From positions 25,110,001 through 25,174,000 of the forward strand of contig OZ004613.1 in the NCBI GenBank assembly GCA_963924565.1: a stretch of 64,000 nucleotides of DNA, in the 5' to 3' direction. Source of the stretch: Ascidiella aspersa (lineage: Eukaryota). This document shows positions 3,819 to 48,042 of this stretch, one piece after another. Position numbers and translations under genes: made by a program. Position 1 is the stretch's first letter; each line of letters starts with the position of its first letter. A model generated the notes under the pieces. It saw only the letters and a program-made list of their open reading frames with translations. It searched no databases and was not told the origin of the DNA.

Positions 3819-3835
3819 GTCAGTAGTCCATAATA

Positions 3836-4516: not shown

Positions 4517-7316
4517 TCAATAGTAGACGTAGTAGTTTCCGCAGGTGCTGAGCTTGTAGTAGGAGCTACGACTGTAAAATGAAGAATAATACACATATTT
4601 AAAATTTCTCTGCTCGATGATTTAGAAATATAAAAATAAGCATTTTGAAAAAGAGTCAATTTATAAATTCAACATTTGAATATAAAAAAGATAGCATGGC
4701 TATTGTATAGAGGTCTGAATAACTCACCAGTACTGGGTGTAGTAGTAGCAGTAGGACTGGCTGGTGGGGTAGCACACACTCCAGCGAAGGTATCCTCCGA
4801 ACATGTATCTGGGGTAGCAGTAAGAGACTCTGCACTTGGAGCAGCAAGAGAAGTGCTGGACAAGGGCGGGGATCAGCTTAGCGTAGTAAGCATCGAACTC
4901 AGCCATAACGACGTTGCAACCAGAGACAAGCTTGTTGGCGTAGGCGGAACGGGATTGGGAGACGTAATACAAGTTGTAGTAGTACTGTCCGTGGAACTTC
5001 TCGAGCATTTCGTTGTACTTGTTCCAGTGGGCGACCTTGGCCTGCAATGCGATAAAGCAATACAGTGAAATACAGAACATTTTTTTATATTGTTATATCT
5101 AAATTGTAACTTACATCCCACATAGCGTCCTAGAAAGCGGTCCTCTTGGCGTCACGGTCATCTTCGAGCTTCTTCTTGTAAGCAGCAATGGAAGCAGCCC
5201 TCTTGCTAAGGCATGTGCTGTACTTTCCGATGACGGACTTGATGAGCTCAGCGGCCTTGGTCTTGTAAGCGGCGATGCTCTTGTCGAAGGTGTCCACGCA
5301 TTCGATGAGCCTCTGGGAAAGCTGTTCCTTGTAGAGAGCGACGGCATCGTCAAGCTTCTTCTTGAGGTCAGCGCTAAGTTTGGCAAGCTCCATACGCTGG
5401 GCATAGGTCAAAAAGGTGCTGCCGTTCCTGTATCACAAAACTGGTTATCTATTTTTTCAAACATAAATAATGGTAGTTTTTGGTTTAGTGAACTTACTGG
5501 CACACGAAGTAGGAGTACTTCATTCTGTAGATGAAGGCGTGTCTCTCCTTGATGATGGCCTCGTATTTTTCAAGGTATTCGTTGTGGTATCCGATCCACT
5601 TGAGCTTCCAAGCAACGAAGGTAGCGGTGTAAGATTTGATGAATTCGTCAACCTTGGCCTGCATTTCGGATTCAATCACAGCGGGGGTCTTGTGAAGGGC
5701 ATTGAGATCTGAAAGAAAATAATGTCATTGCATCATCTGATAATATACAATTAGATAAAAGTAATGTCTACTTACCACAAGTCTTCAAGTTCTTGAAAGT
5801 CATTCCCCTGAAGCAGTAACGGAAAGCACACAAGTTGAATCCAACGCGGCAGTATTTGCGACTGAAGGAATACCAGCATCCGAGGGAGGCACTGAAAATA
5901 CAATAACATTAGATATGACACTATTTTACAAATCTTATATGACTTATTGAATCGCACCATCCGTTGTAGTAGCTCTTCTTGTAGAAGTTGAGGCATCCGT
6001 TGGTCATGTAACAGCGGTAAGAACAAGTGTAGAATCCGATGAGCTTAGACTTGTAGGAGTTAAGTTTGGTGGTGTACTCGGCAATGCATCCACGAGCAAT
6101 GTTGAGTTCGCTGTTGTAGTAGTATGAGGTGACGTAGTTGATGTAGTAGTCGGTGGTGCTCTTAGTGCCTGGTAATCAAAAGTAAGGCATTCATTGTATT
6201 TTAAATCATTCAAGGTAATTCGAAATGAACTGAAAACAATTACAAATAAACTTACAGTAAATTTTCTGCAAAAGGTTCCTGTAGTAGCTGGTCTTGGTGG
6301 TGGCAACAGCAACCTTGAACTTCCAGAAGTTGGCAACGTAAGAAGCGATCCTCTTCTCCAAAGCGGTCTTGTATTCGGCGATCTTGGTGAGACGAGTTTC
6401 AAGGCACTTCTTGGCACTGAGAAAGAATCATTTGTCATTTAGCATTATTTTGATTTACATTAGTTAAATTTAATCCTTACTTTTCGACAATCTTGGCGTG
6501 GAAGTCGATGATCATCTGAAGCTTCTTGCTGAGCAAAGCGTTGTAAGCAACCAAGGCGTCGTATCTCATTTTGATAAGCTTGGCGGTGTATTCAACGATC
6601 TTCTCATCCCGCTCCTTGATAAGGGCATCCCTGTCAGCAGTGGCGCAGCTGAAAACGAATATAACGCAAAAGTCAGCAGTGTATTTTTTAAAACTTACAC
6701 TAGAAGGGAGATAAATTAATGTAGAAAGTTATTACTTTATATGAAAAAAGCGATATATAAAAATTGTCTTTCTGTAACTTACGACATCTTGTAGTCGTAG
6801 TAGATGGTGATGAACTTCTTGTAGGCTTCGATGTATTCGTTGGTCTTCTCGTAAAGAGCGTTGTACCAGGCAACACGCTTGGCAATCATCTCACTGGAGA
6901 TCTTGAAAAGACTCTCCTTGAGGAGGTTCTTAAGTTCTTCAACGACATCATCGACGGATTTCTCTGCACACAAGAGAAGTTTGAGTCTGTTGTTTTGAGA
7001 AAAATTTGTTGCATTTACCGTTTACTTACCAGACCATCCGGTCTTTCCGCAAGTATCATCGGGGTAAACCTTCAAGATGGGCTGGTAGAATTTGGTGGAA
7101 CACCAGGCGGTGTTGAAACTGATGCTAAACCTGTAGAAGGAGGAGCAGGGGAACACATTGAAGTTGCGTCCGCAGTAGTAGGAGTAGTTGCATTGATATG
7201 CGTTGGTGGCCTGCAAAGAAACAATACGTTATTTATTGACGATACATTTATTATTCAAATGTAGTACGTTTATTACTTACTGCAATGCAAGCCAAGAGAA
7301 CGAGTAATAACTTCAT
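4517..7316 (-). pseudogene. Copy 1 of the Tyr/Cys-rich secreted protein gene, with a premature TAG in exon 9
   Basis: ATG at 7316, normal TGA at 4517-4519, same exon structure. Exon 9 reads GCT TTC TAG GAC (stop at 5130-5132) where all other copies have TTC TAC, truncating at about aa 520. Could be a real null/truncated allele or a base-call error. Confidence 0.75.
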
Positions 7317-7386
7317 CGCTGTCGTTTTTCAACTTTCCTCCTTGGATAATCGAAACTGGACTGATTTCTTGTTTAAATCTCCCTGG

Positions 7387-7393
7387 TTATATA
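7387..7393 (-). promoter_or_regulatory. TATA box of copy 1
   Basis: TATATAA on the minus strand in the same context as copy 4. Confidence 0.7.
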
Positions 7394-7789
7394 GGCTTTT
7401 CCCGGACTTAGTTGCACGGACAAAAGACACAAATTGTGCACTCGAAGTGGTATTGTTTTGCCTGGCGCTCATCAGAGCAAAGTAGTTTTCCATTTCAAAT
7501 TGGTTGTTTGCACAGTATAACAACCTCTTACTGCATGTTGGTGTCGAAGCTGCAGTAGAGTGGCGGTTTCCATAGATCTGTTTTGCAAAATAGTTCTTAG
7601 ATGAGCGATGAGTGGTCCTGCTGAGCTACATTATTTTCGTAATTTTATGTTTGTTCTGTAAATTGTCAAATTAAACCCTATTGCGATTGGATTGCATAAA
7701 ACAACATTACTGGCACTTATTCCGTTACGGCAGTGGAACAATTCACCCTGCATCAATGAAGGGTGTTTGTTCAACGCATTTGACTATTT

Positions 7790-8690
7790 TTCATCGCGAC
7801 ATCCTTTTTTTAGGGCTGTTTGTTCAAGATACATTGCCTAGAACAGCGTTGTTTCTTTAACACGTTCGGCTGTTTTTTCATCGCATATCCAAGTGGTTTA
7901 GAATGCGGATGTTGGACTTGGATAGAATATTCTTTAGGATAACAAGCGTTATTTGATGCTGACGAATTACTTGCAGCCAGGTAAAAAACAAAACAAAATA
8001 TAACTGATTTTGCTAACGATACCCAGGGGTAAATACAATCGTGTTTGTTCTGAGGGCAGAGAGGTTTTTGTTGTAACACACCCACTCCTGGATAAACATT
8101 CATTCTTCTATTAATACTACACGAACATTTCGTATTTCTTTTAAAATTTGCAATATGACCTTTACGTTATTAAAGCCGTTTGTTCAAGATACATTGCGCA
8201 GGGTTGTTTCTGTAAATCGTTTTGCTGTTTTTTCATCGCGACATCCAAGTGGTTTAGAATGCGGATGTTGGACTTGGATCGAATCTTCTTTAGGATAACA
8301 AGCGTTATTTGATGCTGGCGGAATATGTTCAACCAGGTAAAAATAAACAACAAATATAGCTGAATTTGTTAACGGTACACACGGGTAAATATTGTATTTG
8401 TTGTGAGATAGGAGAGGCTCTTGTAGTAACACTGGCGGTCCTGGAAAAACAGTTTTTTATCGAACCAACCAGAATAACTCGTATCTTTTTTAAAATTTGC
8501 AATAGTATCGACATCTACGTTATCAGGGCCGTTTGTGTAAGTTATATTGCCTATAGAGCAATTAAGGGTGTTTGCTTAACGCGCTCGGCTGTTTTTGTTT
8601 CACCGAATCCAAGTGGTTACAATTGCGGATGTTGGACTTGGATCAAATCTTGTTTAGGATACCAAGCGTTATTTGTAACTGGCAGAATAA
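7790..8690 (-). repeat. The same three ~360-bp units upstream of copy 1
   Basis: Reverse complement of 24730-25650; ccaagtggttta..gcggatgttggacttggat at about 7890, 8245 and 8610. Two units recur at 1-560. Confidence 0.85.
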
Positions 8691-10936
8691 TGTAAAAGAG
8701 TAAAGCAAACAAGTAGAGATGTCCGAATGTGCATACGATTGTACATACGGCGCGTCCCAACAACAGCTAGATATAATTGTTTTGGTTTCGGCAAAGGTTC
8801 TTAAATTTGGACCTTCCAGGAAAACCTTTCCTTTTAATATACAGATAGCTCGGATCTGTTTTAACATTTCAGGACTGTTTTCCTTCGTTTGATATTTTCT
8901 TATTTAGCCTTCAAGAATATTACATGTAGTATATTGTTCACCACTTTTATCATTTTTTATCACGAGTAAAGATCTTAGTTTCTTTTCAGTTTTTTTTGTT
9001 CTTTTTTGTGTAAAAAAAATAATGCCGATTTTGACGTAACTGCGGTATTCTGAATTTTAGTGAGGTTGTATTAGATATTTTGTAACCTTCGTAGTTTGTT
9101 TTGCATAGCTCCCCTAGGTCTGATAAGAGTTTGTCTGATCGTGTATTTTCCCAAGACTCTTTACCCATTATTTGTACACAAACCAGCCATGCATAAGACT
9201 AACGCATGTTTGGCGTGATATGAATAGGTTCATGTTTTTATTGGTGTATTAAAATAAAATTTGAATATATTTTGTCGCACTGTAAACAGCAAATATAGGC
9301 CACACAATTTCCTACAAATATGCCGTATCGTATAGTATGCATTTCAAAAACTGCAATTTGCCAGTCTTGTAATGACGCACTTAAGTCGTTTTGGTAAAAT
9401 AAATTGACTTACCGTAATTCGTTTTGGTCAAGTGATTTAACTTGGACTTAAGTCTTGGGTATAATGAGTTAGGTTTAAATTGATCAGCATTTTTTTGAAC
9501 AATATTTTATAAAATTTAGCAATGTATCTTAAACTTTTCACGTAAACCAATTAAATTGCTACGATCGAGTTGTTTTTTGTTGGTATTGTTCTTGGTTTCG
9601 TTTTATAGAGATATAAGTGATTTGGCTTGAAAATTACTTGCTCTAATTATGACTCAACTGGAAGTTTACCTCGGCAATTGATGATTTAAACTTGGACTTG
9701 ACTTGTCAATTTCTGTAGAAGAATTGCCTTAAACTTCGGATGTTTTTAAATGACTTAACTGGGACTTAAGTCTATTAAAAATGTTAACCACACTGCAATT
9801 TTCATTTTGTTTTAGGTGGTTAATCCAAACTAGAACCTCTAAAATCACAGTTAATACACACACTTGTAAGCCTTTGTCAAAGCTTTTATCCCTTCTGTGA
9901 TTAAGTTTAACGAAATCCTGTTGTTGGCCTAACTTTCTGTCGATTTGTGGAAAGTCAGATTAAACTTAACCACACACCATAAACCACCACAATAATCATT
10001 TTTTTATAGATTTAAATTTTAAGGTGAATCGTGGCCTGGGATTGCAAACAAGGCTGAAATTCCGATCTTAATTCGGTATCGCACGGCGACCGATACCACT
10101 GAAGTATCGGGCGAGTACCGATACAGCTACTGGGCACCAGGTATCGGCTGCGATCCAATTTATCGCACATTCCTAATAACAATTGTCAAACAAGCAAAAT
10201 AAATGAACATAACCTTTCCAGATTATTGCTACCAGGTTATTAGGACATCACTTGCTTTGGCATTAAAAAGATTATTTACTTCCGGTTGTTAATCGACTTG
10301 TTTTTGATAAATTTAATTTTAAGGTAAAATCGCTGCCATGGATCGCCAAGCATGGCAGGAATTTTCTACATTGATATGGCACTTAACCGGCACCGTTACC
10401 GCGCTGGTATCTGCCAAACTCTCACTGACAATTGGCATCGGGTATCGGCTCCGATCGATATTATCGGTCATCCCAATTTCAAAGAAGCGTGATTTGACAC
10501 AATTTTATTAGAATTGTTTTTACTTTAATAAAATGAATTCCTACTAGGATTTTTTTTTTTTTTCAACAAATGTTTTCAAAATCATCAAAAGATACCAAAA
10601 AAATTTCTAGATGTCAATAGTCCACAATGGACGACAATTAGGCTATTTGCAATAAAGATTTATCTTAACTGAATAAAACTATAAAAAGACGGCTTTCCGT
10701 TCATACAAATTATTTATATTTTTCTGCTTGGCAACATTTGTGAGTGACCTGCCGTTATAACAAACTAAGTGGATAGTTTGATATAGTGAAACAAACGAAA
10801 CAAATGGATGCTATATATTTATTTATTCGGAAGGGGAAAGGAACATTATATTACACAAAGCAATACAACGAGGTAGAGACACATTTTAAGATGGAAATTT
10901 ATATGGGCCTCTTTCCCCGGGAAGCTAAACATCTGT

Positions 10937-13750
10937 TCAATAGTAGACGTAGTAGTTTCCGCAGGTGCTGAGCTTGTAGTAGGAGCTACGGCTGCAAAAA
11001 TAAGTATAAATATATTTATGGAAAATTTTATGGAAAAATCGCTCCGCAACTAAATCAAGATAAGTATAGGCTCTTTGAAAAACGACGAATTGAACTAATT
11101 ACAATAATATGAATCCTAATTGTGAATATGAAACGGAAATCAATGCATTTATATATGAGTTAGCAATACTCACCAGTACTGGGTATAGTAGTAGCAGTAG
11201 GACTGGCTGGTGGGGTAGCACACACTCCAGCGAAGGTATCCTCCGAACATGTATCTGGGGTAGCAGTAAGAGACTCTGCACTTGGAGCAGCAAGAGAAGT
11301 GCTGGACAAGGGCGGGGATCAGCTTAGCGTAGTAAGCATCGAACTCAGCCATAACGACGTTGCAGCCAGAGACAAGCTTGTTGGCGTAGGCGGAACGGGA
11401 TTGGGAGACGTAATACAAGTTGTAGTAGTACTGTCCGTGGAACTTCTCGAGCATTTCGTTGTACTTGTTCCAGTGGGCGACCCTGGCCTGCAATGCGATA
11501 AAGCAATACGTTGAATATATAATACTTTCATATCGTTATATCTAAATTGTAACTTACATCCCACATAGCGCTGTAGAAAGCGGTCCTCTTGGCGTCACGG
11601 TCATCTTCGAGCTTCTTCTTGTAAGCAGCAATGGAGGCGGCCCTCTTGCTAAGGCATGTGCTGTACTTTCCGATGACGGACTTGATGAGCTCAGCGGCCT
11701 TGGTCTTGTAAGCGGCGATGCTCTTGTCGAAGGTGTCCACGCATTCGATGAGCCTCTGGTAAAGCTGTTCCTTGTAGAGAGCGACGGCATCGTCAAGCTT
11801 CTTCTTGAGGTCAGCGCTCAGTTTGGCGAGCTCCATACGCTGGGCATAAGTCAAGTAGGTGCTGCCATTCCTGTATCACAAAATTTGTTATCTATTTGTT
11901 CAACATAAATATTGGAATTTTTTGCTTCAATTAACTCACTGGCACACGAAGTAGGAGTACTTCATTCTGTAGATGAAGGCGTGTCTCTCCTTGATGATGG
12001 CCTCGTATTTCTCAAGGTATTCGTTGTGGTATCCGATCCACTTGAGCTTCCAGGCAACGAAGGTAGCGGTGTAAGATTTGACGAATTCGTCAACCTTGGC
12101 CTGCATTTCGGATTCAATCACAGCGGGGGTCTTATGAAGGGCATTGAGATCTGAAAGAAAATAATGTCATTGCATCATCTGATAATATACAATTCGATAA
12201 AAGTAATGCCTACTTACCACATGTTTTCAAGTTCTTGAAAGTCATTCCCCTGAAGCAGTAACGGAAAGCACACAAGTTGAATCCAACGCGGCAGTATTTG
12301 CGGCTGAAGGAATACCAGCATCCGAGGGAGGCACTGAAAATACAACAACATTAGATATGACACTATTTTACAACTCTTATATGACTTATTGAATCGCACC
12401 ATCCGTTGTAGTAGCTCTTTTTGTAGAAGTTGAGGCATCCGTTGGTCATGTAACAGCGGTAAGAGCAAGTGTAGAATCCGATAAGCTTAGACTTGTAGGA
12501 GTTAAGCTTGGCGGTGTACTCGGCCATGCATCCACGAGCAATGTTGAGTTCGCTGTTGTAGTAGTATGAGGTGACGTAGTTGATGTAGTAGTCGGTGGTG
12601 CTCTTAGTGCCTGGTAATCAAAAGTAAGGCATTCATTGTATTTTAAATCATTCAAGGTAATTCGAAATGAACTGAAAACAATTACAAATAAACTTACAGT
12701 AAATTTTCTGCAAAAGGTTCCTGTAGTAGCTGGTCTTGGTGGTGGCAACAGCAACCTTGAACTTCCAGAAGTTGGCAACGTAAGAGGCGATCCTCTTCTC
12801 CAAAGCGGTCTTGTATTCGGCGATCTTGGTGAGACGAGTTTCAAGGCACTTCTTGGCACTGAGAAGGAATCATTTGTTATTTAGCATTATTTTGATTTAC
12901 ATTAGTTAAATTTAATCCTTACTTTTCGACAATCTTGGCGTGGAAGTCGATGATCATCTGAAGCTTCTTGCTGAGCAAAGCGTTGTAAGCAACCAAGGCG
13001 TCGTATCTCATTTTGATAAGCTTGGCGGTGTATTCAATGATCTTCTCATCCCGCTCCTTGATAAGGGCATCCCTGTCAGCAGTGGCGCAGCTGAAAACGA
13101 ATATAACGCAAAAGTCAGCAGTGTATTTTTTAAAACTTACACTAGAAGGGAGATAAATTAATGTAGAAAGTTATTACTTTATATGAAAAAAGCGATATAT
13201 AAAAATTGAACTTACGACATCTTGTAGTCGTAGTAGATGGTGATGAACTTCCTGTAGGCTTCGATGTATTCGTTGGTCTTCTCGTAAAGAGCGTTGTACC
13301 AGGCAACACGCTTGGCAATCATCTCACTGGAGATCTTGAAAAGACTCTCCTTGAGGAGGTTCTTAAGTTCTTCAACGACATCATCGACGGATTTCTCTGC
13401 ACACAAGAGAAGTTTGAGTCTCTTGTTTTGAGAAAAATTTGTTGCATTTACCGTTTACTTACCAGACCATCCGGTCTTTCCGCAAGTATCATCGGGGTAA
13501 ACCTTCAAGATGGGCTGGTAGAATTTGGTGGAACACCAGGCGCTGTTGAAACTGATGCTAAACCTGTAGAAGGAGGAGCAGGGATACACATTGAAGTTGC
13601 GTCCGCAGTAGTAGGAGTAGTTGCATTGATATGCGTTGGTGGCCTGTAAAGAAACGATACGTTATCTTAATGACAATACGTTTAATACTCAAATATATAA
13701 GGTTTATTACTTACTGCAAAGCAAGCCAAGAGAACGAGTAACAACTTCAT
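10937..13750 (-). CDS. Copy 2 of the Tyr/Cys-rich secreted protein gene (apparently intact, unique promoter)
   Basis: ATG at 13750 (MKLLLVLLACFA), TGA at 10937-10939. Exons match copy 4 (ORF fragments 13212-13406, 11936-12121, 11528-11854, 11170-11493). AATAAA on minus strand at 10822-10827. Confidence 0.9.
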
Positions 13751-13815
13751 CGCTGTCGTTTTTTCAACTTTCCTCTTCAGGTAATTGAATGTGATTTTGG
13801 ACTGCAAGCTTCGGA

Positions 13816-13823
13816 CTTATATA
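13816..13823 (-). promoter_or_regulatory. TATA box of copy 2 in a divergent promoter
   Basis: TATATAAG on the minus strand about 70 nt upstream of ATG 13750; flanking sequence does not align by eye to the other promoters. Confidence 0.65.
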
Positions 13824-14379
13824 GCGTAACCGCCGGTCGATGCACCCAAAATAAACCAATAACAACCACCAACCAGCACGTTTGTTTTAATGCGGATTTG
13901 CGCCAAGTTGTCGAGAGCCTTAAATAAATTGTTTTCGTTTGATTTGCGAAACCCGGATAATCTGATCCGGGTACGAAATTGTGTTTAGGGATGTTTTCGT
14001 GGTTGACACATTGGTAGCCAGCACTGCATAGGCTCTTCAAAAACTACTTGCGATCGCGATTGCCACTTATTAGTTCCGAGCTTCGATACCTAATAAAAAC
14101 AAAATATTTGTGTTTTTTTAATTTGATCGTTGAGATTATTTTTTACCAGTTTTCTTTCATATGGAAACTTTAAAATTGTTTACCTAATTTTGTGTAAATT
14201 GTTAATTTTTAGACTGGTTGAGATAGTCTTATTTGGTTATTTCTAATATTCCATTATTTTTTGTTTATTTTGTTTATTTTTTATATATATATTTTTTTAC
14301 CCCCTTTTTTAGATATTTAAGTAAGCCTACGTGTAGAGCGAACCGTTTCTCTTCTTCTCAGTAATTTGCACCCAATTTC

Positions 14380-14670
14380 AGTTAGCAATAACAAGATATA
14401 CTTGTTGTTTTACGAAGATAAAACTGTTTTACGATCATCGAACTAATGCAACAAATGATGGTCGCCGATCCTACCGGTGGTGCCCAAAAGTGGACAGCTA
14501 TGCTGCGTAAGGTACATTGTTATGACTGCGTGATATTTTGGCACTTATCTAAAACACACATTTCGGTATTGTTGTTTTCCGGACGTGTGCGGACACTTGC
14601 ACCGGGTGGGCTATGACGGTTTGCTGCAATTTCAAGGCACTTGCTGTATTTTGACCACCAGATGGCGACC
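14380..14670 (+). repeat. Dispersed ~250-300 bp upstream module
   Basis: aactaatgcaacaa...tggtgc...ttggcac...aaacac..gtgtgc recurs at ~17110-17360, 18095-18425, 32635-32885, 34050-34380, 42220-42470 and 43565-43895. Confidence 0.7.
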
Positions 14671-16705
14671 GCGTCTTTACGTTTTATCGCAGGGGTGCTG
14701 AACCAAATCAGTTCAGGGGCACGGTCGATGTACAAAAAACCTACCTGCTTTAGACAAAGACTTCTGAAATAAATTAAATTCATATTTTATTCCAAAATAT
14801 CTAAAGATTGATAACCAGAAATTAACTTGACCTCAGATATTTGACGATTTTGAGATACTAATTATATTTTGAAGGGCTACTAATTATATTTTGAAACTGA
14901 AATACTATTTATAGTCGTGTGACAAGGCCAGGTGATGTGTGTTAAAAAATTACAAAGCGGGTAAAGAACACAAGACATTTAGGCGATGTTACAGCTAAAA
15001 CAATACATTTCTAGAAACCTTCAAGTTTCAAAATATTGGACCTATTTAAACAATAGTGTGTAATGGTGAATTATTCAAATTTAAAAACAAAAATATTAAA
15101 AGGTAAGAATATTTAACCAATTTCAGATACTAGGCTTTAACTGTTTCTGAACCCATAGTTTAGAAGGCCTTTTCCCGGAATAATGTTTTTATTCGTTTTT
15201 TTAAACAGATAGTCCTCCGAATTTTGCGGCAAAACTGTGATTTTATAATGTTTGTAGTAATTTTGTGTCATTAAATGAAATCCTATATTGTTAAATGAAA
15301 AGCCTTATCTTTTGAGACACTAACGGGAAATGGAATTGTCGTATTTAAAATCGAAGGAAAAATATATTTATTCCTAACGTAATAATTTGAAACTAATATA
15401 TTTGTTAGCTCTATTGCTTATATTTAGTATAACATAGGCTTCGGTGCTATAATGGTTATAGTCGTTTATCAACTTGTTTTAACACTCAAATAAATATGCC
15501 TTTGTCCAATATTCTGGTTGACATCACATTGTTACTTTGTGAACGCAAAACAGGTTGCTTATAAATTTTCAGTTGTTCATACTAATAAAAAAAAATTGGG
15601 ATTAATAAGTTAATTATTCGGTGTTTATGACTCGACCTAGACTTGTCCTGTTTGGAAACACGTTTGGAATATAAATGGAACTTGACTTAGTGAAATTGTC
15701 TTTGTTAAATCTTTAATTTGGAAAATTGTTTTTATACAGATATGCCAACCTTGATGCATTAAAAAAACGCTTTTTCATGCTGTAAAGAAAGAAATTTGAT
15801 TGGCAAATACTAGGCGAAATACTCAGCATTGCCCAGGTATGATAGGGTACCAGTTCAGTTCTAACCCGGCGAAGTATTTGGCGATTTTAATATGGTAAAC
15901 TGAGTGATTATCAGTTTGAAACAAGTAGAAGACCACTTGCGTTGTTGTCCGGGCGATGGAAATTAATTACCGATGGAATAAAGGCGATCATTTGCGAAAT
16001 CTAAATGCTTTTTGTGTGGCAAACTAAATCGTAAGTAATCAAATTAAATTCTTCATCTTGTAAACTAAAACTCTCATAAAATTTTTGAAAGTTTGTAAAT
16101 AAAACTTTAAGGAAACTGAAATTGTGTCTCTTATTCACTGATACATGTTGCACCGTCCCTGTGTAAATTTGCTAAAGATAATACGCTATAGCAAATTATT
16201 TAAAGTGATTGAGCCCATTTAAATTTTCCATCTTATGTGTTGTACCTGAAATAAATCGACAAAGTTCTCAGCTATAGAATGGAACACTTTGTCTATGCAC
16301 GACCGACACATCATCTACGTACTGTAGATCGATCAGGAATCACGAACAGACCAAAACATTAAAGATAAGGCCCGTGTGGAAAGGATAAATTGTTTGTCTT
16401 GTGTCATTTAAGCGAATTCGTCATTCAAATTCGTCATTTAAGCAAACACGTAATCCCCGAAATCAAAATGCGGCCAACATAAGACAAATCCAACCAGGAA
16501 ATAAAAATTGCTTCCCGCTAAAACCGCTGCAAAAAGCGCGATAATTCTTGCGAACACATCCTAAATTTTACGTGGTTAAACATACTGTAAGTGTAAGAAG
16601 ACAACAAGCTTTAATCTAAATCGCCATTTTTGATTATGTTGGATCATCCCAGAAAGAGGATCATTTTTCTGCCAAAATAAAAAAGGACTTTGTGTTTATT
16701 TAGAG

Positions 16706-31620: not shown

Positions 31621-31665
31621 TTGATTTGATTGATTTGTTGATTTTGTTTGATTGATTGATTGATT
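31621..31665. repeat. (TTGA)n simple repeat, duplicated at ~41203-41248
   Basis: Direct reading of the sequence. Confidence 0.8.
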
Positions 31666-35570: not shown

Positions 35571-35577
35571 TATATAA
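35571..35577 (+). promoter_or_regulatory. TATA box of copy 5
   Basis: TATATAA 77 nt upstream of ATG 35648. Confidence 0.7.
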
Positions 35578-35647
35578 CTAGGGCGATTTAAGCAATAAAT
35601 CAGTCCAGTTTCGATTATCCAAGAAGGAAAGTTGAAAAACGACAGAG

Positions 35648-38525
35648 ATGAAGTTATTACTCGTTCTCTTGGCTTGCATTGCAGTAAGTAATTAAAGTAT
35701 TACATTTAGGTATTAAAGGTATCGTCAATGAGATAACGTATTGTTTCTTTGCAGGCCACCAACGCATATCAATGCAACTACTCCTACTACTGCGGACGCA
35801 ACTTCAATGTGTTCCCCTGCTCCTCCTTCTACAGGTTTAGCATCAGTTTCAACAGCGCCTGGTGTTCCACCAAATTCTACCAGCCCATCTTGAAGGTTTA
35901 CCCCGAGGATACTTGCGGACAGCCCGGATGGTCTGGTAAGTAAACGGTAAATGCAACAATTTTTTCTCAAAACAAGAGACTTAAACTTCTCTTGTGTGCA
36001 GAGAAATCCGTCGATGATGTCGTTGAAGAAGTTAAGAACCTCCTCAAGGAGAGTCTTTTCAAGATCTCCAGTGAGATGATTGCCAAGCGTATTGCCTGGT
36101 ACAACGCTCTTTACGAGAAGACCAACGAATACATCGAAGCCTACAAGAAGTTCATCACCATCTACTACGACTACAAGATGTCGTAAGTTACAGAAACACA
36201 ATATTTCTATATCGCTTAAGATTAAGTAATACCGCTTCTAGCATCAGTCAAACAAAGACACTGCTGACTTTTGCTCTCTGTTCGCTTTTAGCTGCGCCAC
36301 TGCTGACAGGGATGCTCTTATCAAGGAGCGTGATGAGAAGATCGCTGAATACACCGCCAAGCTTATCAAAATGAGATACGATGCTTTGGTTGCTTACAAC
36401 ACTTTGCTCAGCAAGAAGCTTCAGATGATCATCGACTTCCACGCCAAGATTGTCGAAAAGTAAGAATTTGAATTTAACTTATGTAAATTTATATCAAATA
36501 ATGCTAAATGGCAAATGATCCCTCCACAGTGCCAAGAAGTGCCTTGAAACTCGTCTCACCAAGATCGCCGAATACAAGACCGCTTTGGAGAAGAGGATCG
36601 CATCTTACGTTGCCAACTTCTGGAAGTTCAAGGTTGCTGTTGCCACCACCAAGACCAGCTACTACAGGACTCTTTTGCAGAACATTTACTGTGAGTTTAT
36701 TCGTTTTTTTACATTTGTTGAATTTCGAATCGTCTTAAACTATTTAAAATACAGCGAATGACATAGTTTTGCTTACCAGGCACTAAGAGCACCACCGACT
36801 ACTACATCAACTACGTTACCTCATACTACTACAACAGCGAACTCAACATTGCTCGTGGATGCATGGCCGAGTACACCGCCAAGCTTAACTCCTACAAGTC
36901 TAAGCTCATCGGATTCTACACTTGCTCTTACCGCTGTTACATGACCAACGGATGCCTCAACTTCTACAAGAAGAGCTACTACAACGGATGGTGCGATTCA
37001 ATAAGTCATATAAGAGTTGTAAAATAGTGTCATATCTAATGTTGTTGTATTTTCAGTGCCTCCCTCGGATGCTGGTATTCCTTCAGCCGCAAATACTGCC
37101 GCGTCGGATTCAACTTGTGTGCTTTCCGTTACTGCTTCAGGGGAATGACTTTCAAGAACTTAAAGACTTGTGGTAAGTTATCTTTAGTTTATCTATTTGT
37201 ATTTTATCAGATGATGTAATGACATTATTTTCTTTCAGATCTCAATGCCCTTCACAAGACCCCCGCTGTGATTGAATCCGAAATGCAGGCCAAGGTTGAC
37301 GAATTCGTCAAATCTTACACCGCTACCTTCGTTGCCTGGAAGCTCAAGTGGATCGGATACCACAACGAATACCTTGAGAAATACGAGGCCATCATCAAGG
37401 AGAGACACGCCTTCATCTACAGAATGAAGTACTCCTACTTCGTGTGCCAGTGAGTTAATTGAACCAAAAACTACCATTATTTATGCTTGAACAAATAGAT
37501 ACTGTTTTAACTGTTTTTATGATACAGGAACGGCAGCACCTACTTGACTTATGCCCAGCGTATGGAGCTCGCCAAACTGAGCGCTGACCTCAAGAAGAAG
37601 CTTGACGATGCCGTCGCTCTCTACAAGGAACAGCTTACCCATAGGCTCATCGAATGCGGGAACACCTTCAACAAGAGCATCGCCGCTTACAAGACCAAGG
37701 CCGCTGAGCTCATCAAGTCCGTCATCGGAAAGTACAGCACATGCCTTAGCAAGAGGGCCGCCTCCATTGCTGCTTACAAGAAGAAGCTCGAAGATGACCG
37801 TGACGCCAAGAGGACCGCTTTCTACAGCGCTATGTGGGATGTAAGTTACAATTTAGATATAACGATATGAAAGTATTATATATTCAACGTATTGCTTTAT
37901 CGCATTGCAGGCCAAGGTCGCCCACTGGAACAAGTACAACGAAATGCTCGAGAAGTTCCACGGACAGTACTACTACAACTTGTATTACGTCTCCCAATCC
38001 CGTTCCGCCTACGCCAACAAGCTTGTCTCTGGCTGCAACGTCGTTATGGCTGAGTTCGATGCTTACTACGCTAAGCTGATCCCCGCCCTTGTCCAGCACT
38101 TCTCTTGCTGCTCCAAGTGCAGAGTCTCTTACTGCTACCCCAGATACATGTTCGGAGGATACCTTCGCTGGAGTGTGTGCTACCCCACCAGCCAGTCCTA
38201 CTGTTACTACTACACCCAGTTCTGGTAAGTATTGCAACTCATATATTAAAGAATTGATTTCTGTTTCGTATTCACAATTATAATTTATATTATTGTAAGT
38301 TGACTTCTTTCTTTTTCAAAGAGCCTATTTCTGTCTTGATTTAGTCACGGAGCGATTTGTAGTTTCCATAAATATATTTATTTCTTCTTTTTGCATGCCT
38401 CAAATCTTGGTGTCGGCCTATACATCATCGAGCTGTGAAATTTAAAAATGTATATTCCTTCATATTACAGCCGTAGCTCCTACTACAAGCTCAGCACCTG
38501 CGGAAACTACTACGTCTACTATTGA
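35648..38525 (+). CDS. Copy 5 of the Tyr/Cys-rich secreted protein gene (apparently intact)
   Basis: ATG 35648, last exon 38471-38525 ending TGA, TATATAA 35571, AATAAA 38635. Exon ORF fragments are near-identical to copy 4. Confidence 0.9.
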
Positions 38526-39374
38526 ACAGAAGTTTAGCTTCCCGGGGAAAAAGGCCCATATCAATTTCCATCTTGAAATGTGTCTCTACCTCGTTGTATT
38601 ACTTCGTGTGATATAATGTTTCTTTCCCCTTCCGAATAAATAAATACAAATAGCATTCAATTTGGTTCTGTATTAAGTTTACTTAATTTAGAACATACAA
38701 TTATCACAAACGGTTTTTAGGAAGCATAGAAATATAACAATTGATAAGTGTTTTATGCGAGATGAATTACAAAAAAAATCTATGATCAAAGTATACTATA
38801 TTACATGCTCAGCCCATTTAGAGTACCTCAAAAACCAAATTGCTTTTAATTGTATTAAGATTGATTTAAATGTTTTAAGATTGACTGTCAAAATTTGTCG
38901 CATCGGAAAACATCATAAACAGTTACCTTTTCAGCTCCAGAATATTGTATTTTTCTTTTTGTGCATTTCCTTGCACCAAATCAAAACAAAAGACATCCTT
39001 GCGAAGTCTTAAATGAAAAGTAAATTTTTGGTTGAGCATCAAACTAACTAAAACCACGTGGGAGAAGCCACATTGATAAACAAAGTGCAGCCTTGTATTA
39101 TAGGCAATGAGAATCTACTGCAAACACAAATTGTTGAGGTTCTAGGGTCAATCAATTTGCTTGTTTTCCCTCCTATGGATCAAAACATTTTCTTTATGTT
39201 TTTTAACTTTGAACGCGAAATATATATACGAACACAATTAATACAGCTTGATAATTAATTGCAAAGCCAAAAAGGTCCAGTAGATCGACATCATCTTGAT
39301 TAGGACGTTTCGATACGAGCTTGTATCATCTTCAGTTAATGTGACTCAGAAGCCATTCAAGCATCACTTATAAG

Positions 39375-39694
39375 CAGGGTTACCATCTGCTCAAACCAAA
39401 AAATAAGCACGCTACTCAAAAAAAGCGCACTACTGAAGACCAGGACTAGATCCAGGATTGCGGGATTACGTGAAATCCATCTTTTAGGAATAATGTCCAT
39501 AAAAAAGTCTCTCACTCCTCCTTTAATGTAATAGATGTGATAAAGAACACTTTTAGAAACTAAAATAAGGCAAACTAAGCACACACCTCTAAAATAAGCA
39601 CGTTTCTTAAAAAACAAGCACAGTTGCGTTTTCTAAGACACTGCACCCAAAAATAAGCATAAATCTTAGAAATAAGCACGGTTTAGCAACCCTG
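39375..39694. mobile_element. Segmentally duplicated copy of MITE 29792-30111
   Basis: Same TIRs and TSD CTTATAAG. Confidence 0.85.
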
Positions 39695-40280
39695 CTTATA
39701 AGAGATGGGAAGCAATTGTTATCAATCAGATTTGGAAAGAAGAAGCATAATTTAGCACCTTGAGGTGTTGAACACGTACTGCGGTGTTGATAAATTGTCG
39801 ACGTTTAGTTCGGGGCTGCAGTCTTGGATAGATAGCGCCTCGAGTAGCCGCAATCTAAAACGTCTGAAGCCCATCCGAGAACTTCGGGTTTGCAAAAATC
39901 AACTTATGCTCGGGATGTTGTAAGATGACTGCCAACCTCTGATTTCGAAATCAGAATGCTAAATTATGATCATACTTTCTAACTCAGACTGTTAACAATT
40001 GCGTTCCATCTTTGATAAGTGATGCTTGAATTGTTTCTCGGTCGCATTAACTGAAGATGATACAAGTCCTAATCAAAATGATGTCGATCTACTCGACCGT
40101 TTTGGCTTTGCAATTTATCATCAAGATCCGTGCATAGTGTACCCAAAAATTAATACAAATTTGGCATATTGTGCAGAAAGTTCTTTGTCAATCATCACAT
40201 GCCGTGTTTTACTTTAGTTTGGTTCGCCATAGGATTTAAGGAACTTGTAAAGATCATGTTGAAATAACATCGAACTAAAT

Positions 40281-40983
40281 CAGGGGTTCAAACCTTTTTT
40301 GTTGCTCGTACACCTTAGTCAGGTCAGGGCATTCTTCGTACCCCAAAAAATTTCTAATGGATTTTTTTTTAGATGTATATTGCTAACTTACATTTCGTTT
40401 AGATCTTAATTAAACGTTAAACAGGTATTTCTCACAATAATCGCAAAAAGAAATTAAACGTCAATTATTTTGTTTGCCACATCTCAGTGAGTTATTTGTT
40501 GCTGCTTTAATGATAAAATTCGCTTAAACGATGGTTCGAGTTTACTCAAGGAAAAATAGGTTATCATATTTAAGATTTTTCATGTATATATTGTTTGTTC
40601 AATACCTCCTGAGGCACAGTCGATTTCTGTGCACCAAATATTTACACTGTATTTTACACTCTAGTTCTAGAGGTGGATAGTAGACCGTTTGTAGCAGATA
40701 TACAGCAAGCCAAATCTTGTGCATTGTTGTTTAATGCTGGCCGAAGCTAAACTCATATTTAGTTCTCAATCTCTTAAAGTCGTACGGCGCTGTTAAAAAA
40801 CGCATGGTTATACGACAATGAGTTTATTTGCTAAATAACAACAATTATTGGTAAAAAAATAAAATAAAAATGTACTGTGAAATCTGTTTGAAAAGCCGCT
40901 CTGTGGCCAAAGGATCTTCGTACCACTTGATGTTTAACCTCGTAACCCCAAGGGGTACAAGTACCCCGGGTTGGGAACTTGTG
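40281..40983. mobile_element. Segmentally duplicated copy of element 30698-31401
   Basis: Same ends and TSD AACTAAAT. Confidence 0.8.
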
Positions 40984-43900
40984 AACTAAATGAATACGAA
41001 ATGTGGGGAACCGAGGTTTATTAAATAGCACTTTTATCAGCAACATGTTATAAACAATTGCTACAAACACACAATGTTGGCACAATCATAACAAAGTTTT
41101 GGACGCAATCTTGTTGGACACAATGTTCCAACATAACGTGACGTCATATGCAATTAACGTTAAACACAACTCTTGTTCTCTATTGAGCACAAATTTGTTT
41201 AATTGATTTGATTGATTTGTTAATTTTGTTTGATTGATTGATTGATTGGCAAACATTCAATTTAAAAGGATATGCGGCGCAGTAGGCACACAAAAGGAGT
41301 CTGAATACTGTCCGAAATAACGGCACTTTTCGCATTCAGACAGTTTTTGAGTCCCACGGCACAACATGACATGATGCATAACGCCTGTAGACTAATTAGA
41401 TTTTCTTTAAACAGACAAAAACATTCTGAAAGGAGTGAAAGTTCACCCAGCTATAATTTTTTCAATTAAAGTTAGTAAAAATAATGTTTGCGGACATAAA
41501 ACAGCTCTATCGCATTTAAAAGCATTTTAACTAACTTGCCTACTTCATATGCAATTATATTGATTCAGCGAAACTGTTAATTGGCATTATTTCTGCCCAC
41601 AGCCGACACTCTGGCCGCAGGTGTAAGCACAATTTTTTAAGATATTTGTTCTTACACATTAAAAACAATTAAACGCGACCGTTTACAAACATTGGGTATG
41701 TGTGGAATTAAAAACATACATTTTAAAAACAATTAGTGTAAGGGCTTTTACAAACACGACAGGTCCGACAAGTCAAATTTAAGTGCAGTCAGTTATGACA
41801 ATAAAAGTTGACTTGCAAGGTATTCAAGCAAACACGTAATCCCGGAAGTAAAATGTGGCCAACATAATTTTATCCCATCTGGAAATAAAAAAGTGCTTAC
41901 TGCTAAAACCGCTGCAAAAAGCGCGATAATCATTTAAAATTTTGCGTGGGTAAACATACTGTAAGAAGCCAATAGGCTTTGACTTAAATCAGCATTTTCT
42001 ATTATGTTGTTTAATCCCAGAAAGTGGATCATTTTGTCTGCCAAGATGAGATCGTGTTTATTTAAGAGCGTCCCTTGGCGCTCGCTTGAAACGCGAGTCA
42101 CCATTGCACACATTGCCTCTCTCTCTTGTTACAAACACCTCACCGTCCGAGTCGCCAAAAAGCCTCAACGTTACTGCCGAACTCGCTGAATCATTGCAAT
42201 TGCACATAGTTGGCACTACCAAGATATTTGTTGTTTTAAGCACATAGGACTGTTTTATCACAAACGAACTAATACAACAAACGATCATAATCGTCGCTCG
42301 TACCTTTGGTGCTATAAAGAGATCAACGCGACTGCGTACAAATTTGTTGCGATTTCCTAATATGTTGGCACTCTTCTGAAAACACACACTCCGCTAATGT
42401 TGTGTTACGAACGTGTGCAAACCCTTACATTTGGCTTGCTGTGGTTGTAGATAACAAACAGCTTTAAACGTTGCTGCAGTAAAGCGGTTTCGTCATTACG
42501 TGAGGCTTTAATATTTTGATGTTAACACAACATATAGCCTAGTGATATATTTGGTGGTACAACGGCGTACGTCCCATTGCAGCTTAACATGCGAAAACAT
42601 AATGCTTTTCTAATTTTTTGTGTAAAAGTGTTCCACCCATTAACATACAATGTACAAAACCTAAAAATATCATAACTTGGTTAAAATAGGTCTTTCCAAA
42701 CTTTTCTGTCTGCAACCCTTTTAATTTATTAAACGTTTTAGCGCCTTGTTTCGTTTCGCGTAATCTAGAAGCAAAACATTTCGTTGTCTGCTAACTTTGG
42801 CCACAGCTTGTTGAAATAATGTAACTCTTAAGGGAATTGGGTTTTCGGGTTAATTTAAAACTTGCCTATGATAAAAAATCATTTTATATGAATGCAACAC
42901 ATGTGTCAAACTAATGATGTGGACCTAATTATGACAGCTTGCATGGCCGCACCACCCAGTTAGGAATCATGGTTTTTAAACTTTGGGATTATGGTTTTAA
43001 TCTAACCCAGAGGGTCTTAAACTTTTTTGTATCTTATGTTTTGCCCTTCTATCAAAGATAAATATCAGATTTACCCCCAATATATAAAATTGTTCTTATT
43101 TAATAAAAATACGAAATTAGCAGATTGCACCAGTTATATTCAGCATTGCTTTTTGGCAACGAGTTGTTTAATGTCTGGTAAAGAAGCAGATAATGTACAA
43201 CGAACATAAGATTCAACATGAAATCGGCATCGTACTTTAGATTTTATGGTAAGCAATCCGGAGAAACCTCATCGGCATAGGTAAGTTAAAGAAACGGAGC
43301 CAGAATATTCAGAGCTTGAATACCTATCCTTGGATTTACCCCCTAAAACGAAGAAATTTACGTCTGTGGGAAAATTTACCACAGGTTAAGAAAGGTTGCT
43401 CTAAACCGAGAGTGTTGCATATGCCGTTCGACACTACATTTTTAGCATGTTTAGTTACCAAGCGGTTAGTCCAATAAAATACGTAGAAAGTCATAGTGCT
43501 ACCCTGTTTTGAAGAGCTGTTTTAAAGCCCTTCATGTAATTGCTAATACGTTCAGCAACCACATATTACTTGTTGTTCTAAGGGATATAGAAATGTTTTC
43601 AGATCATTAAACTAATGCAACAAGTGATGATAGTTGTTTGTACCATGGTGCTTCAAATTGGACAGCGATGCTGCGTCAGATACTTTGTGATGATTTCCTG
43701 TTTTTTGGCATTCATTTAAAAACACACGCTTCGCTAATGTTGTGTTACGGACGTGTGCGAACACTTAATTTGGGTTTGCTGTGGCTGTAGTGAACAAACA
43801 ACTTTAAAGTGCTGTTGTATTTTAGTGATTGAATTGAGTGCCAAAAGCTAGCTAGGCAAGTCGTACGATAGCATTTTAACCGTTAGAGGGCGACTGCATA

Positions 43901-45085
43901 AGTTAGCTTTAATTCATGATTTTCAAAATTTTTTTAATGACTTCCCCCAAATCCAATATTGTTGCTTGATAGTCGACCATTCGTATCCGAAACGCAAACG
44001 CATTAGCCTTTTTTTTCAATTATCTCCTTCTCTGCGAAACTGTAAAAAATTAAGGATCAAAGAATAATTCTGGTATGAGTTTAAACTGTTGCCAAAAATC
44101 AAAATGAGAAAGAAAATGTTATCAAAACTACTAATATAAACTAAATAAAATCAATACAGTTGTAAGCACCGGTTAATTTGAGTTTATTAAAAAATAATAT
44201 TCAGAAGAGTCACGTTGGTTTAAAGCAAATTGCCTTTAACTTCACCACAAGCAAGCCGTCGATATTATGTTTGTCAAATTAAACGACAGGATTTATCTCC
44301 AACAAATGTATACCCTACAGCTAAACCTTGAATTTTCATTAAGTAACTCAAAAACCAATTTTGTATGCAATGTTGCTCATTATGGCTGCATATCAATATA
44401 TACATGTGCATGAATATTTAAAATTAAACCCCAAACTAAACAAATATATATGAGCCAGGTAGCAGTTCAATCAAGCTTGAATTAACAATCGAAAACGTAA
44501 TGACGATCGAGATAAAACTGCGAACGCCACATATATTTTATTTTATTTTACTTAATACCAAGACTGTCAAAGGCTATAACAACAGCAAACAGGGTGATAT
44601 TGTACGTTATTGTCTGTTTAACATTTTCATACCTGTTTGAATCACGCTGTTATGATAATGAATATTCGATCCAAGTACAACATCCGCAATATAAACCACT
44701 TTAGTGTCGCAATAGAAAACCGAGCGCTTTAAGCAAACAGCACATGCAAGGTAAATCAATCAAACTGCCGTAAAAACACAACGACCCGCCACATTGCATT
44801 AACAAACTGCATTAAAGACTAACATGCTTATGCATATAGAACAAGGAAAGAATTGCGGATATAGCTAACGAACGCTCACTGCCCAAATGTTTTGCGAAAC
44901 ACATCCTTGGTAACAGCAAGTTAGTTTGGCCACCGATACAACATGTAGAAAAGAGTTGTTAAGCTATAACAACAACCAATTTGGAATGGCAAACTACTTT
45001 GCTCTGATGAGCGCCAGGCAAAACAATACCACTTCGAGTGCACCATTTGTGTCTTTTGTCCGTGCAACTAAGTCCGGGAAAAGCC

Positions 45086-45092
45086 TATATAA
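45086..45092 (+). promoter_or_regulatory. TATA box of copy 6
   Basis: TATATAA 77 nt upstream of ATG 45163. Confidence 0.7.
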
Positions 45093-45162
45093 CCAGGGAG
45101 ATTTAAACAAGAAATCAGTCCAGTTTCGATTATCCAAGAAGGAAAGTTGAAAAACGACAGCG

Positions 45163-48042
45163 ATGAAGTTATTACTCGTTCTCTTGGCTTGCATTGCAGT
45201 AAGTAATAAACGTACTACATTTGAATAATAAATGTATCGTCAATAAATAACGTATTGTTTCTTTGCAGGCCACCAACGCATATCAATGCAACTACTCCTA
45301 CTACTGCGGACGCAACTTCAATGTGTTCCCCTGCTCCTCCTTCTACAGGTTTAGCATCAGTTTCAACAGCGCCTGGTGCTCCACCAAATTCTACCAGCCC
45401 ATCTTGAAGGTTTACCCCGAGGATACTTGCGGACAGCCCGGATGGTCTGGTAAGTAAACGGTAAATGCAACAAATTTTTCTCAAAACAAGAGACTCAAAC
45501 TTCTCTTGTGTGCAGAGAAATCCGTCGATGATGTCGTTGAAGAAGTTAAGAACCTCCTCAAGGAGAGTCTTTTCAAGATCTCCAGTGAGATGATTGCCAA
45601 GCGTATTGCCTGGTACAACGCTCTTTACGAGAAGACCAACGAATACATCGAAGCCTACAAGAAGTTCATCACCATCTACTACGACTACAAGATGTCGTAA
45701 GTTACAGAAACACAATATTTCTATATCGCTTAAGATTAAGTAATACCGCTTCTAGCATCAGTCAAACAAAGACACTGCTGACTTTTGCTCTCTGTTCGCT
45801 TTTAGCTGCGCCACTGCTGACAGGGATGCTCTTATCAAGGAGCGTGATGAGAAGATCGCTGAATACACCGCCAAGCTTATCAAAATGAGATACGATGCTT
45901 TGGTTGCTTACAACACTTTGCTCAGCAAGAAGCTTCAGATGATCATCGACTTCCACGCCAAGATTGTCGAAAAGTAAGAATTTGAATTTAACTTATGTAA
46001 ATTTATATCAAATAATGCTAAATGGCAAATGATCCCTCCACAGTGCCAAGAAGTGCCTTGAAACTCGTCTCACCAAGATCGCCGAATACAAGACCGCTTT
46101 GGAGAAGAGGATCGCATCTTACGTTGCCAACTTCTGGAAGTTCAAGGTTGCTGTTGCCACCACCAAGACCAGCTACTACAGGACTCTTTTGCAGAACATT
46201 TACTGTGAGTTTATTCGTATTTACATTTGTTGAATTTCGAATCGTCTTAAACTATTTAAAATACAGCGAATGACATAGTTTTGCTTACCAGGCACTAAGA
46301 GCACCACCGACTACTACATCAACTACGTCACCTCATACTACTACAACAGCGAACTCAACATTGCTCGTGGATGCATGGCCGAGTACACCGCCAAGCTTAA
46401 CTCCTACAAGTCTAAGCTTATCGGATTCTACACTTGCTCTTACCGCTGTTACATGACCAACGGATGCCTCAACTTCTACAAGAAGAGCTACTACAACGGA
46501 TGGTGCGATTCAATAAGTCATATAAGAGTTGTAAAATAGTGTCATATCTAATGTTGTTGTATTTTCAGTGCCTCCCTCGGATGCTGGTATTCCTTCAGCC
46601 GCAAATACTGCCGCGTCGGATTCAACTTGTGTGCTTTCCGTTACTGCTTCAGGGGAATGACTTTCAAGAACTTGAAGACTTGTGGTAAGTAGACATTACT
46701 TTTATCGAATTGTATATTATCAGATGATGCAATGACATTATTTTTCTTTCAGATCTCAATGCCCTTCACAAGACTCCCGCTGTGATTGAATCCGAAATGC
46801 AGGCCAAGGTTGACGAATTCGTCAAATCTTACACCGCTACCTTCGTTGCCTGGAAGCTCAAGTGGATCGGATACCACAACGAATACCTTGAGAAATACGA
46901 GGCCATCATCAAGGAGAGACACGCCTTCATCTACAGAATGAAGTACTCCTACTTCGTGTGCCAGTGAGTTAATTGAACCAAAAACTACCATTATTTATGC
47001 TTGAACAAATAGATACTGTTTTAACTGTTTTTATGATACAGGAACGGCAGCACCTACTTGACTTATGCCCAGCGTATGGAGCTCGCCAAACTGAGCGCTG
47101 ACCTCAAGAAGAAGCTTGGCGATGCCGTCGCTCTCTACAAGGAACAGCTTACCCAGAGGCTCATCGAATGCGTGGACACCTTCAACAAGAGCATCGCCGC
47201 TTACAAGACCAAGGCCGCTGAGCTCATCAAGTCCGTCATCGGAAAGTACAGCACATGCCTTAGCAAGAGGGCCGCCTCCATTGCTGCTTACAAGAAGAAG
47301 CTCGAAGATGACCGTGACGCCAAGAGGACCGCTTTCTACAGCGCTATGTGGGATGTAAGTTACAATTTAGATATAACGATATGAAAGTATTATATATTCA
47401 ACATATTGCTTTATCGGATTGCAGGCCAAGGTCGCTCACTGGAACAAATACAACGAAATGCTCGAGAAGTTCCACGGACAGTACTACTACAACTTGTATT
47501 ACGTCTCCCAATCCCGTTCCGCTTACGCCAACAAGCTTGTCTCTGGCTGCAACGTCGTTATGGCTGAGTTCGATGCTTACTACGCTAAGCTGATCCCCGC
47601 CCTTGTCCAGCACTTCTCTTGCTGCTCCAAGTGCAGAGTCTCTTACTGCTACCCCAGATACATGTTCGGAGGATACCTTCGCTGGAGTGTGTGCTACCCC
47701 ACCAGCCAGTCCTACTGCTACTACTATACCCAGTTCTGGTAAGTATTGCAACTCATATATAAATGCATTGATTTCTGTTTCGTATTCACAATTATAATTT
47801 ATATTATTGTAATAAGTTCACTTCTTTCTTTTTCAAAGAGTCTATTTCTGTCTTGATTTAGTCACGGAGCGATTTGTAGTTTCCATTAATATATTTATTT
47901 CTTCTTTTTGCATGCCTCAAATCTTGGTGTAGGCCTATATATCATCGAGCTGTGAAATTTAAAAATGTATATTCCTTCATATTACAGCCGTAGCTCCTAC
48001 TACAAGCTCAGCACCTGCGGAAACTACTACGTCTACTATTGA
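45163..48042 (+). CDS. Copy 6 of the Tyr/Cys-rich secreted protein gene (apparently intact)
   Basis: ATG 45163, last exon 47988-48042 ending TGA, TATATAA 45086, AATAAA 48152. Exon ORF fragments are near-identical to copies 4 and 5. Confidence 0.9.

Follow-up and report, generated by a model that had tools for sequence, protein, structure and literature searches.

The CiEnds genes of Ciona belong to a family reportedly cloned in the 1990s and are said to mark glandular zone 6 of the endostyle. In Table 5 of PMC7347631, accession AB010895 bears the name "Endostyle-specific gene 1", and AB010896 stands for another such gene. Endostyle glandular cells produce the mucous net (PMC12205476). Both the composition of that net and the iodine-carrying protein of animals without thyroglobulin are poorly known. 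Here, we describe a cluster of 11-exon genes in a stretch of 64,000 nucleotides (nt) from the sea squirt Ascidiella aspersa (contig OZ004613.1, designated C7:25110001-25174000; hereafter, the window). By sequence, these genes are members of the ascidian endostyle-specific (CiEnds1/CiEnds2) family. We put at about 0.55 the probability that they are a head-to-head array of recently duplicated Ends-family genes for a secreted, basic helical-rod protein made in bulk and built into the mucous feeding net.

With copy 1 as the query, self-BLAST finds six copies in the window at 93–97% DNA identity, two on the minus strand (~4.4–7.4 and 10.8–13.8 kb) and four on the plus strand (19.5–22.3, 26.0–29.1, 35.6–38.6 and 45.1–48.2 kb). 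Their coding spans, in window positions, with products in amino acids (aa) and open reading frames (ORFs) in codons, are the following:

Copy 1: 4517 to 7316, minus strand; 11 exons, canonical promoter, in-frame TAG at codon 521.
Copy 2: 10937 to 13750, minus strand; 11 exons, intact 648-codon ORF, foreign upstream region.
Copy 3: 19548 to 22214, plus strand; exons 2–11 only (10 exons).
Copy 4: 26105 to 28951, plus strand; complete unit, 11 exons, 648 aa.
Copy 4, exons 1 to 6: 26105-26140, 26211-26391, 26458-26638, 26777-26944, 27009-27169 and 27257-27467, plus strand.
Copy 4, exons 7 to 11: 27534-27649, 27717-27927, 27997-28309, 28380-28693 and 28897-28951, plus strand.
Copy 5: 35648 to 38525, plus strand; complete unit, 11 exons, 648 aa.
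Copy 6: 45163 to 48042, plus strand; complete unit, 11 exons, 648 aa.

Pfam and HMMER were queried with single exons, and composition, BLASTP and tree analyses used the joined 648-aa model. Exon 10 searched by HMMER against 1.84 billion representatives returned nine proteins, three of them full length (634, 641 and 649 aa), from Ciona and Clavelina. Cluster look-up and profile search put names to the relatives: H2YRI4, H2YML8 and H2YLM1 from Ciona savignyi, and the uncharacterized Ciona intestinalis LOC104266762 and LOC100186110 and Clavelina lepadiformis LOC143452699. Two further C. intestinalis relatives carry the name "endostyle-specific precursor": O44237 (BAA24830, NP_001107601) and O44236 (BAA24829, NP_001099017). 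By accession order, O44236 and O44237 would be CiEnds1 and CiEnds2, respectively. The original prediction had pointed to Ends1/Ends2-type proteins as being of possibly similar size, and local BLASTP shows the resemblance to be true homology: the spliced copy-4 model matches O44237 at 38% identity over 626 aa (E 4.5e-143) and O44236 at 36.5% over 561 aa (E 8e-121). Pairwise identity by BLASTP is highest for LOC100186110 (E 5e-174) and H2YRI4 (E 2e-172), at 43.5–43.9% over ~635 aa, and Clavelina LOC143452699 reaches 40% over 636 aa (E 6e-151). Aligned with seven full-length relatives, the copy-4 model is colinear from signal peptide to tail at 37–44% identity.

The full-length tree puts the window copies in a clade by themselves, with the Clavelina protein as sister (86/98 support); the CiEnds clade is separate (100/99), and the backbone is without resolution. 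The exon-10 tree, with the O44236 row left out of account, is unresolved. No relative outside ascidians appeared in the HMMER, cluster look-up or profile searches, and Halocynthia HrEnds surfaced in none of the searches made. Pfam returned nothing above cut-off for nine exons, only sub-threshold noise, and the relatives have no precomputed Pfam domain, in keeping with the earlier view that the protein holds no catalogued domain. An ESM Atlas search with one relative gave no usable match.

The gene model was built on copy 1 in gene orientation and its 11 exons were then projected onto the other copies. Every full copy has 11 exons with GT-AG at each intron, and all exons map in each copy except exon 1 of copy 3. 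The sole weak donor, GTGCGA of intron 6, is retained in all copies. The joined coding sequence (CDS) of 1947 nt comprises 648 codons and a stop, which reproduces the gene structure and product length first proposed. None of the 10 exon junctions carries a gap when the copy-4 model is aligned with the seven relatives, which independently backs the splice model, weak donor and short last exon included. A TATATAA box lies 73–77 nt 5′ of the ATG in five copies (1, 2, 4, 5 and 6), an AATAAA lies 105–110 nt 3′ of the stop in all six, and ~200 bp of 5′ region is conserved among copies 1, 4, 5 and 6. The positions of these signals in copy 4, and of the boxes in the promoter comparison, are as follows:

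26028 to 26034, plus strand: TATATAA box of copy 4, 77 nt 5′ of the ATG.
29061 to 29066, plus strand: AATAAA polyadenylation signal of copy 4, 110 nt 3′ of the stop.
7393-7387, minus strand: TATATAA box of copy 1, from the promoter comparison.
35571-35577, plus strand: TATATAA box of copy 5, from the promoter comparison.
45086-45092, plus strand: TATATAA box of copy 6, from the promoter comparison.

At third codon positions, the coding sequence has a GC content of 0.73 and a C content (C3) of 0.52, with an effective number of codons of 34.8, against an intron GC of 0.27 and a window GC of 0.38. The TATA promoter and the preference for C-ending codons in AT-rich DNA, both noticed at the outset, are thus confirmed, and codon bias of this strength would be consistent with high expression.

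Copy 4 encodes a precursor with 78 Tyr (12.0%), 31 Cys, 30 of them outside the signal peptide, and seven Pro, with no Pro inside the helical regions; the Tyr and Cys numbers, first obtained by hand count, proved exact for this copy. Net charge is ~+38 with an isoelectric point (pI) of ~9.2, and all family members are basic (net +16 to +58, pI 8.6–9.5), with 9–12% Tyr and 24–33 Cys. Fourteen Cys, 32 Tyr and six of the seven His are conserved in at least seven of eight members. His is the most conserved residue type (in copy 4, positions 183, 393, 408, 531, 543 and 589), often in a Y-H or H-x-x-Y context. It is conceivable that these His bind metal or act as a pH switch.

The layout described earlier, from signal peptide through Y/C-rich cap, Pro-free helical region, Y/C-rich linker (~243–351) and second helical region to a Y/C-rich tail ending in YYVYY, is borne out. 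The signal peptide, judged by eye, is MKLLLVLLACIAATNA at the N-terminus of the 648-aa precursor. Residues 71–352 and 353–648 share 25% identity across 244 aligned positions (E 3e-6), and the N-terminal half also matches the C-terminal half of a Ciona protein (E 1.5e-9). From these alignments, the protein is read as an old internal duplication of two homologous modules of ~290 aa. AlphaFold2, given a C. savignyi relative and a family alignment of 21 rows, returned a mean predicted local distance difference test (pLDDT) score of 77 and a predicted template-modeling score of 0.41; the model has six long helices (59, 107, 44, 68, 113 and 43 residues), with cap, linker and tail at low confidence. 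For a natural CiEnds1 fragment spanning the second module, pLDDT exceeds 90 in the first two helices of the hairpin. These models suggest a common plan for the two modules, in which three helices of ~60, ~110 and ~40 residues form a long antiparallel hairpin rod with Tyr, Leu and Ile along its seam, and a Y/C-rich segment, modeled at low confidence, comes after it. Judging by helix lengths, the 110-residue helix would be ~16 nm long, with the two shorter helices packed along it.

Searches with two relatives' models found no specific solved fold. Foldseek gave best E values of 0.66 and 0.77, to generic long helical hairpins only, with BAR/I-BAR proteins in the top rows, and VIA-align gave best Z scores of 9.4 and 10.4; both sets of scores are in the range reached by unrelated helical proteins (Z < 13, Foldseek E > 0.6). 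Complex prediction for a pair of first rods from the C. savignyi relative scored 0.00, which is evidence neither way.

Mapping the helices of the relatives' models onto the window protein places 44 of its 78 Tyr inside them. The mean angle to the aliphatic face is 69 degrees for these Tyr, near Leu (64) and Ile (62), against 133 for Glu. More than half of the Tyr would therefore probably build the rod seam rather than serve as free "stickers". The remaining 34 Tyr, together with 21 Cys, are concentrated in 218 non-helical residues. The idea of stickers alternating with rods thus stands as regards the rods, predicted as long helices in two relatives, but not as regards the Tyr that fall within helices. 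Taken together, these results partly support the earlier interpretation: Ends homology, secretion and, at the level of models, helical rods hold, and the picture of stickers loses strength. Any self-assembly or curing by disulfides, dityrosine or DOPA, and any halogenation, is putative.

The link to the endostyle comes from the database names of the two "endostyle-specific precursor" relatives and from one published table of expression values. Ciona KY.Chr12.60 (LOC100186110) reaches 1435.65 in one tissue column and at most 0.13 in ten others (PMC9953650, Table S1). The text of the same paper allows only the endostyle above 0.5 and reports high endostyle values for CAT2 in the two species compared; the high CAT2 value falls in the same column as that of KY.Chr12.60 (PMC9953650, Table S1). 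Very high expression, as first proposed for the window genes, is established for their closest Ciona relative only, through this table (PMC9953650). We hypothesize that the protein would be made in bulk by endostyle glandular cells of A. aspersa and released to the pharyngeal mucus, where the cationic rods could bind acidic mucus polymers. The Cys/Tyr-rich segments might link molecules, by disulfides at least, and the protein would in this way become part of the mucous feeding net.

Several observations weigh against this reading. The column with 1435.65 is headed "Ciona_heart" (PMC9953650, Table S1); from the threshold in the text and the CAT2 row, we read that header as misplaced and take the column as endostyle. 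The paired Styela gene has only 5.48 in endostyle (PMC9953650, Table S1), the window subfamily is without a resolved one-to-one Ciona orthologue in the full-length tree, and three of the six window copies carry a defect or a changed promoter. As a separate remark, the Ciona tissue headers of PMC9953650 Table S1 appear shifted, the one column with values above 0.5 being that labeled heart, and caution is advisable on reuse.

The charge of the protein also suits a different role, in which cationic amphipathic helices, instead of forming a structural fiber, would coat the mucus for capture or antimicrobial defense and hold on to bacteria, particles or lipid droplets, somewhat as an exchangeable apolipoprotein or a phasin does. 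We consider this less likely than the main reading. A net charge of +16 to +58 runs across the family, a family profile weakly matches apolipoprotein A-I in the PDB (E 0.0017), structural neighbors include the phasin PhaP and an apoE fragment, and zone 6 of the Styela endostyle has been termed an antimicrobial epithelium (PMC10980280). The apolipoprotein match is, however, weak and probably compositional, with no Pfam apolipoprotein match beside it; the helices lack Pro and greatly exceed the 22-mers of apolipoproteins in length; and the ~14 conserved Cys suggest a fixed, disulfide-stabilized structure.

The abundance of Tyr raises a second alternative, namely a substrate for iodination or peroxidase chemistry: a Tyr scaffold beside the thyroid-peroxidase zone, iodinated or dityrosine-coupled extracellularly as an analogue of thyroglobulin, which tunicates, to our knowledge, lack. 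All members have 9–12% Tyr with the 32 conserved positions, the relatives are endostyle-specific, and endostyles bind iodine and show peroxidase activity in zones 7 and 8 (PMC12212465). We find the proposal doubtful, as over half of the Tyr would sit, with poor accessibility, in the hydrophobic seam that the predicted helices form, and the nine exons searched with Pfam hold no thyroglobulin-type domain. The broadest form of this idea would make the Ends family both the main net protein and the endogenous Tyr scaffold iodinated or cross-linked by endostyle peroxidase, the functional forerunner of thyroglobulin. This is speculative, and we would not expect it to hold; if true, such a double role would explain why dozens of copies are kept in one sea squirt.

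It is improbable, in our view, that the protein is a product of another secretory tissue in this species (tunic-forming epidermis, stomach or adhesive papillae), such that the endostyle label would not be transferable. In the tree, the window genes group apart from both Ciona clades, and this genome has a diversified family at five or more loci, but each characterized or quantified relative is endostyle-specific. Last, an array of decaying pseudogenes without current function, to which the stop codon of copy 1, the loss of exon 1 in copy 3 and of the shared promoter in copy 2 might point, is very hard to reconcile with four ORFs open over 648 codons, intact splice sites throughout, retained TATA and poly(A) signals, and ratios of non-synonymous to synonymous substitution rates (dN/dS) of 0.10–0.27 between copies, with exons conserved well above introns.

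Between copies, exons are 97.5–99.3% identical against 73–96% for introns (gaps scored as mismatches). Together with the low dN/dS, this indicates purifying selection on the CDS or preferential homogenization. In the two defective copies, relaxed selection is not yet evident, which suggests recent damage or gene conversion. The TAG at codon 521 of copy 1 (window 5132-5130) replaces a TAC found in the other copies, and copy 1 is probably a pseudogene or the source of a truncated product. Copy 3 is probably a pseudogene as well: a deletion fuses its upstream region to the end of intron 1, so that the TATA box, the 5′ untranslated region, exon 1 and the start of intron 1 are gone, and with them the ATG and the start of the signal peptide. 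In copy 2, promoter homology to the other copies stops ~25 nt before the ATG. Its upstream 475 bases (window 13776-14250) are found only once in the genome, and this unrelated sequence holds a TATATAA box (13823-13817) placed 73 nt 5′ of the ATG. Complete canonical units are therefore copies 4, 5 and 6 only, and fully open 648-codon ORFs number four. Six copies are indeed present in the window, as claimed before, but their functional number had been overstated and the cluster as a whole comprises eight.

The array grew by segmental duplication, and its two arms are inverted. Copies 1 and 2 and a further pair upstream of the window make up the minus-strand arm; copies 3–6 make up the other, on the plus strand. 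Two features mark this history:

13776 to 19478, no strand: cluster center, from which minus-strand and plus-strand copies diverge head to head.
22851 to 28702, no strand: inverted segmental duplicate, 97.4% identical over 5.86 kb to 4718-10569.

The inverted duplicate pairs copy 4 and its spacer with copy 1 and its spacer. Tandem duplication links 28859-38656 with 38433-48173 (98.4% identity), and copy 6 sits in a 9.5-kb tandem unit 98.4% identical to that of copy 5. Both inner genes of the head-to-head arrangement, copies 2 and 3, have damaged or replaced 5′ ends, so the rearrangement that made the inverted halves probably broke in there. A spacer element of ~1.9 kb, non-coding by ORF scan, is repeated at 1-1873, 8124-9992 and 23430-25297 with 95% identity and contains internal self-similar stretches offset by ~360 bp at 78% identity (7815-8693 and 24729-25613). 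It is possibly a transposon or satellite remnant that mediated the duplications.

Elsewhere in the window, tandem repeats of the GGAGCC/CCGGAGCTGGAG type at 3495-4177 (periods 12, 35/41 and 48) produce long spurious "PELEPELE" ORFs. An ORF scan of 48200-64000 found no convincing coding ORF, and an Rfam search of the window gave zero matches. A poly-Gln-like CAG/CAA run lies at ~55.5–55.7 kb and a (CA)n microsatellite at ~61.9 kb.

With exon 10 as a protein query, the 308.6-Mb assembly yields at least 39 family matches, in this cluster and five further loci:

C7, window cluster: eight near-identical matches, two of them just upstream of the window.
C4, 6.08–6.15 Mb: ~10 matches.
C3, 7.47–7.61 Mb: 13 matches.
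C3, 8.07–8.17 Mb: six matches.
C1: one match.
C4, 11.57 Mb: two matches.

Representatives of the other loci match colinearly over the full length, exon by exon, at 30–45% identity. Going by these alignments, the loci are old paralogous subfamilies, each tandemly amplified. Tandem spacing is regular, at ~11 kb in the C3 arrays and ~7.3 kb in the C4 array at 6.08–6.15 Mb, and many copies share an identical exon 10.

The family itself was already known, though functionally unstudied, and as a discovery this is modest. Ciona expresses the family at very high levels, specifically in the endostyle; the family is ascidian-only so far and has ~39 gene copies in this genome. It is without an assigned fold, domain or function, and concrete targets for study come from the gene models, from the record of which copies are intact, from the predicted two-module helical-hairpin plan and from the conserved Cys, Tyr and His positions.

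Among described proteins, helical hairpins such as the PLC-beta C-terminal domain, the EmrA hairpin, PhaP, the flounder antifreeze "Maxi" and BAR/I-BAR domains are alike in general rod architecture, with VIA-align matches of Z 9–10.4 over 100–186 residues. They have no sequence relation to the window protein, and none of them has Cys/Tyr-rich segments. A BAR, I-BAR or F-BAR identity is not supported by Foldseek (E at least 0.66, template-modeling score at most 0.29) or by VIA-align, with Z scores of at most 7.8 for BAR entries. ApoA-I, ApoA-IV and ApoE share K/E/A-rich amphipathic helices with the window protein, which, unlike them, is Cys- and Tyr-rich and strongly basic. An exchangeable apolipoprotein is not supported, as there is no Pfam match, only the weak E of 0.0017 to ApoA-I, and no Pro-punctuated 11/22-mers. 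Thyroglobulin, a secreted protein with many Tyr from a thyroid-related organ, is a functional analogue only; identity with it is not supported, Pfam having matched neither Tg type-1 repeats nor a cholinesterase-like domain in the exons searched. DOPA/Tyr-rich marine adhesives of the mussel foot protein type are largely disordered, with short low-complexity Tyr/Lys repeats; the window protein does not fit this type, since the prediction assigns about two-thirds of it to long ordered helices and short tandem peptide repeats are lacking.

The nearest systems remain those of other ascidians. LOC100186110 and H2YRI4 have the best identity to the window protein, yet fall outside its clade in the tree. 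Clavelina LOC143452699 is sister to the window clade, on a long branch and with a shorter C-terminal tail. The CiEnds proteins O44236 and O44237 resemble the window protein in length (650 against 648 aa) and in the start of the signal peptide (MKLL/MKIL), are colinear with it throughout, and share its two-module plan, its Cys/Tyr framework and its basic charge. Unlike the CiEnds genes, those of the window represent a different subfamily, in a genome where family copy number is far higher.

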